Shown here: positions 43,901 to 46,900 of the stretch, in pieces
How positions within the stretch are numbered: position 1 is the first letter of the stretch
Layout: each line of letters starts with the position of its first letter
Source: Macrostomum lignano
Lineage: Eukaryota
DNA length: 63,686 nucleotides
Reading direction: 5' to 3'
NCBI GenBank assembly: GCA_002269645.1
Contig: NIVC01004032.1
Location: forward strand, 1-63,686
Position numbers and translations under genes: made by a program
Notes under the pieces: model-generated
Seen by the model: the letters and a program-made list of their open reading frames with translations, nothing else
Told to the model about the DNA's origin: nothing
The model's database searches: none

Positions 43901-46900
43901 CGCAGCAGCGCCGAAGCGCCAGCAGAAGCGGCGCCAGCGCTGCACAGGCCGGAGCGAAGGCCGCCGCCCGAGTTGGCGCCGGCGCGCACGCAGCGTCCGG
44001 TGAAGACGTGGCGCAGCTGCACAACCTGGCCGTAGTGAATCTGGCGCCCCGCCTGGCGCCGCTGCTCAGCTGAGTTGGCGGCCGTCTCTGCCGCTGCCGC
44101 AATCTGCCCAAAAATTAGGAATTTGTTCAAGTCGACAAAATGCACGGCTTGTTTGTTGCAAGGCAGAGCTCAGAAAGTCCTATGCATGCAAACACCTATG
44201 TTTTGTGCTCAACGGAATGCTCATGCCTGTTCGTCTCCCTGCTGGGTGCAGGGGCGCGGCCAAGAGTCTTCATCGAGGGGGCATCAATTCATACATGGGG
44301 CGTCGCGTTATAGAGGGAGCATCACTTCATGGAGGGAGCATCACTTCATAGAGGGAGCATCACTTCATGGAGGGAGCATCACTTCATAGAGGAAGCACCA
44401 CTTCGTAGAGGAAGCACCACTTTATAGAGGGAGCACCACTTCATAGAGGGAGCATCACTTCATGGAGGGAGCATCACTTCATAGAGGAAGCACCACTTCG
44501 TAGAGGAAGCACCACTTTATAGAGGGAGCACCACTTCATAGAGGGAGCATCACTTCATTTAGTGAGAAATTAATACGAGCGTAAGAGGAAGAGAGAGATG
44601 GATAGGGAGGATGTCATTCTGCTAAATAAGTTTGTAAGGCGAAGAATGAGGTTAGGGAGATGCGCCAGCTCTAGACAAGGGTAGAGAAGGGAGGGGCTGA
44701 GCTGAGAGAGGCAGGAGTTGCGAGGAGGATCGGAGAGAGACAACAAAGAAACAAATTGTACCCAGCGACTCACCTTCAGCTGAGTGAGGCGGGCTTTCAC
44801 GGCGGGCTCCAGCTCCGTCTCCTCGGGGCCAGCGACGGAAGCCAGCAGTTTCCGGTGCTGCTTCTGCAGTTTGTAGCAGTCGGGAGCGCAGATCTCGAAG
44901 GACAGCGCTGTGGGAGTTTCAGGGGTTTTTCACTGGAGCTACGGAGTTCACCTTGAAATGATTCAGGTGTCATTTTTCGAAGCAGGGACTTCTTTGCAGG
45001 CCCTGTGATGGATTCCTCAACAGGAGGCCTGCATGTTTCATTCTTAGTGGGATAAAAGACCGTATTTTAAATGCACACAATCATTTTGAATTTGCTGCTT
45101 TCGGTGAAACAAATCGTGATTGAAAAGCTGAATACTACTTTCAGCAGCCGCATTCAGGGTTAAAAAATGGCTTGAGCAAAACTCCGTGCTCGTAACTCGC
45201 AAATTTTAACATTTGATGTCACTTTCATATCTAGACCACTCACTTGAGGATTTTCGAGAATGAAGTAGAACAGCAAGTAGAACAGCTACTCAGAATTGCT
45301 TCCTGAAATTTTTTGTAGATTTTTCGATAGTCTCTCAAATGGAAAGAACGAGTTTGTCTCCGTGCGGTGTCAAATTGCAGTTGCACATTTCAATCGGAAT
45401 CCGAGACGCAGCCACGCCTTGCAGACTTGCAGACTGGCTGCAGCAGTGACAGAGATTCAGAGGGAGAAGGACAGACCAGGCTTCAAACCTTGGCCCAGGT
45501 GATATCCAACACTTGAATAAACAGTTACGGCTCAAGGAGGCGGGGCGGATCGGGCTATAAATTGTGATTGTGTAAGATCAGCAGAAGGCAAAAATGTTGG
45601 AAACCCAGCCAGATTCTCTCAGAGTGGATTTTTTAATCTCAAGCTTAAAATGAGAGTTCTGTGGGTCGTCACCTTGCTGGTCTGCATTGTCTTGGCATTT
45701 GGTGAGTGCTCACTCATGGACCATTAGTTTAGTCACCTGATAGACACTGTCATGGATGCTCTGGTACACCAGAGCCACACAGAGCAGACAGAAAAAGCGA
45801 AACAAAATTGCTTTTCAGACAATTCCGAAGCGGCGCCAAGATGGAAGCTGCGGCCTTTGCGAAACGGCGGGTTCGCCAAGAGCCCGTTCCAGAAGCTTCG
45901 CAGTTTTTTCAACCGCGGCAAAGGCAGGAACCCGAACAGGCCAACTCATGGTGGCTCTAGAAGAGGCAACTCCGGTCATTGGAAAGACGGACCAGGCATG
46001 ATGAATCAAGCCAGGGGAATAATTTATCAATAGACAAGGCCGGGTGAGTCACCATTCGGTAGTTCAGCTGCAGTTGGCAACCAACACCGCAACCAGCTCG
46101 TGACCTTTGTTCTAACCCCAATCTTCGTTCTAGAATGAGCGGAACGGCCGTCAGAAAGAACTTCACGTGCTCGGTGGCGGCAGAATACATCAATAATAAT
46201 GAACTTTATGACTTCTGTCAAACCGATCTGATTTGGTGTTGGTTGCCCTCGGGTTCACCAGCCAAATAAACAGTTTGGACTCCGAGTTTTCACCGCATGT
46301 TGTCTTCCGTGATTGTTTATTTGTGCTTAAAGACTCGTGTCAGTGCCTGCACTTTCCCACTGTGCGATCAGTTCAGAGAACCTCGGATTTCTCACCTTGG
46401 CTGTCCGGGCACTGCGGTTGCTGCTTGCCGCCACCGCTGCGGACCATCAGGCAGTCGTGCATGGAGCTGCGTGAATTTTGAGGATTAGCATGGAGCATTA
46501 TGCTTTCGGGTTCAGGAAAGCAGATTAGGCAGAGATATACCAGACAGACAGACAGACAGGCAGACAGACAGACAGACAGACAGACAGACAGACAGGCAGA
46601 CAGACAGACAGGCAGACAGATAGACAGGCAGACTGACAGACAGACAGACAGACAGACAGACAGACAGACAGACAGACAGACAGACAGACAGACAGACAGA
46701 CAGGCAGACAGATAGACAGGCAGACAGACAGACAGACAGACACAGAGACAGACAGACAGACAGACAGACAGACAGACAGACAGACAGACAGACAGACAGA
46801 CAGACAGACAGACAGACAGACAGACAGACAGACAGACAGACAGACAGACAGACAGGCAGACAGATAGACAGGCAGACAGACACACAGACAGACAGACAGA

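Follow-up and report, generated by a model that had tools for sequence, protein, structure and literature searches.

The DNA analysed here, called the window throughout, is a stretch of 63,686 nucleotides (nt) from Macrostomum lignano (contig NIVC01004032.1, assembly GCA_002269645.1). On its plus strand lies a small gene with two coding exons, whose spliced open reading frame (ORF), rebuilt by script, is 88 amino acids (aa) long. The gene sits in antisense inside the second intron of a large gene for an IP3R/RyR-like channel. An earlier inspection of the letters alone, referred to below as the sequence-only reading, described it as a hidden gene for a secreted cationic peptide and proposed an antimicrobial role. 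The gene model is already public, and its product is an uncharacterised, orphan small peptide that is probably secreted. The features of the locus and of its surroundings are collected in Table 1.

Table 1. Features of the nested peptide gene, its host gene and the neighbouring genes (positions in the window).
Feature	Position	Strand	Remarks
GC box GGCGGGGCGG	45539-45549	+	next to the TATA box on its 5' side; the plus strand of the entire window has just two GGGGCGG
TATAAA	45556-45561	+	sole TATAAA within 45300-46400; ~40-45 nt 5' of the annotated transcript start
Possible upstream ORF (uORF)	45594-45653	+	19 codons; its TGA overlaps the main ATG (ATGA)
ATG	45650	+	A at -3
Coding exon 1	45650-45701	+	52 nt (17 codons + 1 nt); predicted signal-peptide n-region (R2) and h-region
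Intron GTGAGT...TTTCAG	45702-45818	+	117 nt, phase 1; junction also used by GenBank BOX15_Mlig027405g1
Coding exon 2	45819-46033	+	DNSEA (predicted signal-peptide c-region), 66-aa basic peptide, TAG stop
3' untranslated region (UTR)	46034-46295	+	AATAAA at 46265-46270; expected 3' end, poly(A) site itself not observed
Host channel exon 1	46961-47088	-	joined in frame, GTGAG donor
Host channel exon 2	46396-46466	-	joined in frame; ~100 nt past the expected 3' end of the peptide gene
Host channel intron 2	44148-46395	-	contains the entire peptide gene in antisense
Host channel exon 3	43753-44147	-	joined in frame, AG acceptor
Myelin-PLP/M6-like exon	7223-7633	+	
Fibrinogen C-terminal domain gene	10498-11672	+	
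adh_short/17-beta-HSD11-like gene	50566-51567	-	short, 144 aa

Each element named in the sequence-only reading was found in the sequence, namely the GC box, TATAAA, ATG, a hydrophobic exon of 17 codons, a phase-matched GT-AG intron, a second exon and AATAAA. The intron itself stood, but its position, given as 45701-45819, was off by one at both ends and is corrected to 45702-45818. The antisense nesting is borne out by the mapped channel exons 1-3, as the stretch from promoter to AATAAA (45539-46270) lies wholly within host intron 2. With GTGAG donors and AG acceptors, these three exons form one continuous frame, and the channel N-terminus that they encode matches its counterparts, the N-terminal domains of IP3R1 and RyR (E = 2.8e-6). 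Further downstream, the channel carries the Pfam domains Ins145_P3_rec, MIR, RIH_assoc and Ion_trans. In the part of the record that covers 35602-56033, no called gene corresponds to the channel gene (14805-47088, minus strand). Besides many minisatellites, its introns contain an actin copy and a Gypsy-type long terminal repeat (LTR) retrotransposon (16519-20198). The channel is probably missing there because of these repeat-rich introns and the filter against repeat-overlapping transcripts that was applied in the annotation described next.

The peptide gene proved not to be hidden. GenBank lists it as hypothetical protein BOX15_Mlig027405g1, partial, whose 104 residues include all 88 of the rebuilt ORF with 100% identity and read across the exon junction (...IVLAF/DNSEA...). 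The gene range of this entry (45602-46033, 432 nt) exceeds its 315-nt coding sequence by 117 nt, the length of the intron, and thus GenBank already holds the splice. The deposited annotation of Mlig_3_7 consists of RNA-seq-derived transcripts only, obtained with StringTie, Trinity de novo assembly and TACO, with ORFs from TransDecoder (PMC5730564). TACO was run with --no-assemble-unstranded, and non-coding and repeat-overlapping transcripts were discarded (PMC5730564). Because the annotation was built solely from RNA-seq, a model with the same splice points to a plus-strand spliced transcript, the lack of which the sequence-only reading had named as grounds for rejecting the gene. The spliced transcript is very probably real. 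A text search of the literature did not find the gene id Mlig027405.

The label "partial" means that the ORF runs off the assembled transcript at its 5' end, which places that end at 45600-45602. This is ~40 nt past TATAAA, and no AG precedes it. A spliced-leader acceptor was therefore rejected as the transcript 5' end, and the distance from TATAAA, together with the lack of a preceding AG, makes the end look like a promoter start. Translation likely begins at ATG 45650, which is Met17 of the deposited protein, and the 16 extra N-terminal residues would then be translated 5' UTR. The 88-aa ORF was annotated only because this 5'-open extension of 16 codons raises its length to 104 aa. We take the default minimum of the ORF caller to be 100 aa. 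The setting used is unstated in PMC5730564. The possible uORF, an element that the sequence-only reading had passed over, would be relevant only if transcription began 5' of 45594, and the assembled transcript begins 3' of the uORF ATG. A transcription start ~30 nt past the TATA box would leave the uORF AUG within ~8 nt of the cap, where it would likely be skipped.

The 3' UTR is predicted to fold at -86 kcal/mol (z = -3.8) and is more stable than its shuffled versions, none of 200 being as stable. A perfect inverted repeat of 13 nt (46076-46088 and 46235-46247) closes the fold and brings the stop-codon region beside the poly(A) signal. Separately, an 18-nt direct repeat on the plus strand (45516-45533 and 46265-46282; AATAAACAGTT exact, 15 of 18 positions overall) flanks the whole gene unit, with its copies 749 nt apart, and the second copy includes the poly(A) signal. 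It could be due to chance (expectation ~0.1) or a relic of the unit's insertion. Exon 2 also holds an imperfect palindrome (45844-45906, plus strand), in which the coding DNA resembles its own reverse complement and the antisense translation is 57% identical over 21 residues (tblastn E = 0.03).

How often such a gene model arises by chance was estimated by scanning both strands of the 63.7-kb window for an ATG with a signal-peptide-like exon, a GTRAG donor and, in matching phase, a second exon of 50 codons or more. The model that starts at ATG 45650 is the only one in the window. Locally shuffled windows contain a mean of 0.35 such models, and the ORF pattern by itself is therefore weak evidence. 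Of the flanking signals, TATAAA falls in the correct 60-nt slot with P = 0.024, AATAAA falls within 300 nt of the stop with P = 0.17, and the joint expectation for the ORF model with both signals is ~0.0015 per window. The annotated frame also ranks first of the six in codon-usage score, with +0.10 per codon compared with -0.14 to -0.48 for the others. In composition, the peptide exceeds the background of random ORFs two- to threefold in Gly (17% vs 6.5%), Asn (9% vs 3%) and Lys (7.6% vs 3.6%), and it lacks Cys, Val and Glu. On average, the window's random stop-free ORFs of 60 aa or more are themselves basic, at a charge of +0.065 per residue. The net charge of the peptide is unusual, yet within what this GC-rich genome gives by accident.

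Searches for relatives returned only the gene itself. Neither the precursor nor its mature part matches Pfam, and no PDB sequence matches, even at E <= 10. A word-index search of 5.8 billion proteins and a full phmmer search of 1.84 billion representative proteins gave only the self-match. The sequence-only reading had recognised no known family. An exact look-up of the 88-aa form found no entry, the deposited form being the 5'-partial protein of 104 aa. Within the window, tblastn and blastn revealed no second copy or paralogue. The actin neighbour ~2 kb downstream of the peptide gene clusters with two other annotated M. lignano copies; their loci (L002 and L003) have only the 2.3-kb actin unit in common with the window, and the peptide gene is absent from both. 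The locus was not taken for part of a repeat or transposon, since it occurs once in the window and nothing in 43 kb of other M. lignano DNA matches it. As judged by these searches, the gene is an apparent lineage-restricted orphan.

The N-terminus of the predicted precursor combines a basic n-region (R2) with an uncharged h-region of 15 residues, and the -3/-1 rule is satisfied at two sites only, after A16 and after A22. AlphaFold2 places a helix over residues 2-20 (block pLDDT, the predicted local distance difference test score, 79-88), which covers the signal-peptide region. Additionally, phase-1 introns directly after the signal-peptide region are typical of secreted-protein genes. Exon 1 thus probably encodes a signal peptide. 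The 66 aa that follow ...NSEA include 11 Gly, 10 Arg and 5 Lys but a single Asp and neither Glu nor Cys, so that the net charge is +14, and these counts match those of the sequence-only reading. The view of the product as small, Cys-free and very cationic behind an exon-1 signal peptide thus holds up on the n- and h-regions, the -3/-1 sites, the predicted helix and the residue counts. Beyond the signal peptide, AlphaFold2 predicts coil with a block pLDDT of about 54-57, except for a 9-residue helix at 40-48 (PFQKLRSFF; block pLDDT about 57-69). The model as a whole has a mean pLDDT of 64 and a predicted template modelling score (pTM) of 0.25. In a charge-hydropathy comparison, the peptide falls with disordered sequences, its mean normalised hydropathy of 0.355 being well below the boundary value of 0.489. 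The net charge is +0.21 per residue, and Gly, Pro, Asn and Ser (G+P+N+S) make up 41% of the residues. Candidate convertase sites comprise one dibasic site (RR65-66) and three R/K-Xn-R motifs (RPLR29-32, KLRPLR27-32 and RSFFNR45-50). The description that fits these predictions best is that of a secreted, intrinsically disordered polycation.

That the locus is a real gene for such a polycation, whatever its single role, appears somewhat more probable than the contrary, and several observations weigh against it. No orthologue or paralogue was found in the protein collections, the window or the two actin-paralogue loci. Codon bias is weak, the score of +0.10 per codon comparing with 0.3-0.9 in the window's conserved genes, and the G+C content at third codon positions (GC3) is 0.61 in the peptide ORF vs 0.74-0.91 in those genes. 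Composition and charge lie inside the upper tail of the random stop-free ORFs in the window, 1-4.5% of which are equally basic. The annotated ORF passes 100 aa only via its 16-codon 5' extension, the call of a signal peptide depends on heuristics and the AlphaFold2 helix, and the transcript could be non-coding. Several of these points would also suit a young, possibly de novo, intronic antisense or non-coding transcript, whose ORF would lack a selected peptide function and would have passed the length filter by accident. The lack of a homologue among 5.8 billion and 1.84 billion proteins, the weak codon bias, the strongly structured 3' UTR and an annotation that exists only through the 5'-open extension to 104 aa all fit this explanation, as does the basic Arg/Gly/Pro-rich composition, which is a tendency of random ORFs in this genome of roughly 50% GC. 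However, such an accident would have had to produce a complete and well-formed gene, in which GC box, TATA box and AATAAA flank an ORF with A at -3 and a textbook signal peptide that is directly followed by a phase-1 intron. The ORF model with TATAAA and AATAAA has a joint chance expectation of ~0.0015 per window. The levels of Gly, Asn and Lys well over the random-ORF background and the absence of Cys, Val and Glu also argue against it, and a transcript of this kind is unlikely.

If the gene does encode a secreted disordered polycation, the role of the peptide may be one of several. The antimicrobial role would make it a linear cationic host-defence peptide from epidermal, gut or gland cells that binds and disrupts microbial membranes. 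The signal peptide, the small size of the product, its lack of Cys and its net charge of +14 suit this role, and orphan status suits the taxon-restricted nature of many invertebrate antimicrobial peptides. A TATA-box promoter, common in inducible effector genes, also counts toward it. The sequence-only reading saw here the usual layout of linear antimicrobial peptides; the signal peptide, positive charge and absence of disulfides hold, but the hydrophobicity and the amphipathic helix do not. Hydrophobic residues make up 24%, compared with 35-46% in magainin 2, cecropin A and LL-37. The stretch that had looked amphipathic has an 11-residue hydrophobic moment of 0.656, which is the maximum of the peptide and no better than chance, being reached by 52% of shuffles of the same peptide; with windows of 14 and 18 residues, the maximum is reached by 43% and 35% of shuffles. 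No amphipathic helix of at least about 12 residues with ~35-50% hydrophobic residues is predicted, and the only helix that AlphaFold2 predicts outside the signal peptide has 9 residues. The 41% of G+P+N+S resembles the non-lytic Pro/Arg-rich peptides apidaecin and drosocin (47-50%), as does the mean hydropathy (0.33-0.34 in the latter), a resemblance of composition only. Repeated PRP or PxP motifs are absent, with isolated RP dipeptides at 29-30 and 58-59, and so is an anionic pro-piece. The window and the two actin-paralogue loci show neither a tandem gene family nor a paralogue, Pfam and PDB give no match even at E <= 10, and 1-4.5% of the window's random ORFs are equally cationic. A literature search found no paper connecting Macrostomum with an antimicrobial peptide of this kind. 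The antimicrobial role is thus not supported beyond charge and is doubtful, although the product may be a non-helical, polycation-type defence peptide. By a speculative and improbable extension, the peptide, perhaps born de novo inside the channel intron, would be the founding member of a class of host-defence peptides that is confined to Macrostomum. Its members would be disordered polycations rich in Gly, Arg and Asn, more of which the annotation pipeline would systematically miss among ORFs below 100 aa. Only tentatively can the peptide be placed among the fast-evolving secretions of glands, be it in seminal fluid (from the prostate), in mucus, in rhabdites or in the adhesive organs; the sequence-only reading had itself offered a mucus, adhesive or seminal-fluid peptide as an alternative. 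M. lignano has many prostate-limited transcripts of this type, 31 of 76 being without a BLAST hit and 38 of 65 ORFs having a signal peptide (Weber et al. 2018, PMC5977470). Such numbers of orphan secreted transcripts make a reproductive or gland product equally plausible, and the rapid evolution of reproduction-related genes would account for orphan status. However, the supplementary text of the prostate screen, searched for the gene id, the peptide and its DNA, yielded none of the three (PMC5977470). The gene id is also absent from the text of a three-species study of reproduction genes and from germline and neoblast lists, a weak point, as older studies use other ids. The product might also be a precursor of peptide hormones or neuropeptides, from which cleavage at basic sites would release short signalling peptides with receptors as their targets. 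Of the working criteria for planarian prohormones, namely a signal sequence, a length below 200 aa and basic sites flanking peptides (Collins et al. 2010, PMC2953531), the 88-aa precursor shows the first two and, in part, the third. The single dibasic site, the three R/K-Xn-R motifs, the disorder and the single-copy state of the product are in keeping with such a precursor. It is nonetheless unlikely, as the peptide lacks a canonical Gly-dibasic amidation site, offering only an odd G-K-G-R, has no repeated peptide copies or acidic spacers, is basic throughout its pro-region, and shows no likeness to neuropeptide families (Pfam E <= 10) or to other flatworm proteins among the 1.84 billion representatives. 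Some other role takes up a small remainder.

For the secreted disordered polycation, the following course of events can be proposed. The gene's own GC-box and TATA promoter would drive transcription of this orphan, nested antisense in channel intron 2, and translation would start from ATG 45650 rather than from the 5'-partial codon at 45602. The exon-1 signal peptide would direct entry into the endoplasmic reticulum, with cleavage after Ala22 or Ala16. This would release a peptide of 66-72 aa, rich in Gly, Arg, Asn and Pro, with a net charge of about +14 and disordered save for the short helix PFQKLRSFF. Proprotein convertases could trim it further at RPLR32 or RR66. Once outside the cell, this flexible polycation may bind to a receptor or to polyanionic surfaces, of which microbial envelopes, mucus and the glycocalyx are examples, and would not be expected to act as a pore-forming amphipathic helix.

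The finding is modest, as the gene model is already public and the antimicrobial function proposed for the peptide is supported by charge only. If made and secreted, the peptide would be one more lineage-restricted small secreted peptide in a tractable regenerating flatworm; if the host-defence class existed, it would provide the first antimicrobial effector from a free-living macrostomorph flatworm. In situ hybridisation, RNA interference and transgenesis are routine in M. lignano, and the role of the peptide could therefore be settled quickly. The case also exposes a general weakness of the annotation; other genes for secreted peptides of less than 100 aa are probably unannotated in the M. 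lignano genome.

The surroundings of the gene are rich in duplicated and repetitive DNA. The 2.3-kb actin unit, whose single intron harbours an 18-bp minisatellite, exists in duplicate, dispersed copies, which lie in the window at 47865-50148 (plus strand) and 24066-25906 (minus strand). The inverted copy, which lies inside the channel gene, has an altered C-terminus. The copies on two other contigs (L002 9670-11914 and L003 9801-11535) are 93-95% identical, and their flanks are not shared. Tandem repeats are very dense, with 47 rows from Tandem Repeats Finder in the window (e.g., 12186-13356, 37359-38483 and 51624-53359). They include a 183/365-bp satellite at 60478-62317, whose copies are 99% identical, and (CAGA)n at 46541-46949 in channel intron 1. 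The 144-aa adh_short neighbour looks like the C-terminal part only of a 714-aa UniProt model from an older assembly, and a second annotated copy of it was not found in the assembly.

Taxon-restricted cationic host-defence peptides of invertebrates include the arminins of Hydra and the NLP/caenacin peptides of Caenorhabditis elegans. Like these, the M. lignano gene is small, has few exons and a narrow lineage, and encodes a precursor of ~90 aa with an N-terminal signal peptide and a strongly basic, Cys-free mature part. However, arminins carry an anionic pro-region before the cationic part, whereas the mature region here is basic throughout, and both groups are multigene families, whereas no paralogue was found here. 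With magainin, cecropin and LL-37, the product shares a signal peptide, a net positive charge and the lack of disulfides, but those peptides are 35-46% hydrophobic with helices of at least 18 residues, compared with 24% and one predicted helix of 9 residues. The helminth defence molecules of trematodes are likewise flatworm secreted peptides of ~8 kDa behind a signal peptide and have been called cathelicidin-like. In flukes, those molecules make up a family in which an amphipathic helix at the C-terminus is conserved, whereas the C-terminus here is predicted to be coil and no relative was found among the 1.84 billion representatives. The uniformly basic composition, atypical of prohormones, and the lack of an amidation motif set the peptide apart from the products of the planarian secreted peptide prohormone (spp) genes, with which it shares a signal sequence, a length below 200 aa, potential convertase sites, poor conservation and discovery from transcripts (PMC2953531). 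Membership of the Mlig-pro set is defined by a prostate-limited in situ signal; that set and the present gene come from the same species, and many of the prostate candidates likewise combine small size and a signal peptide with the absence of any BLAST hit (PMC5977470).

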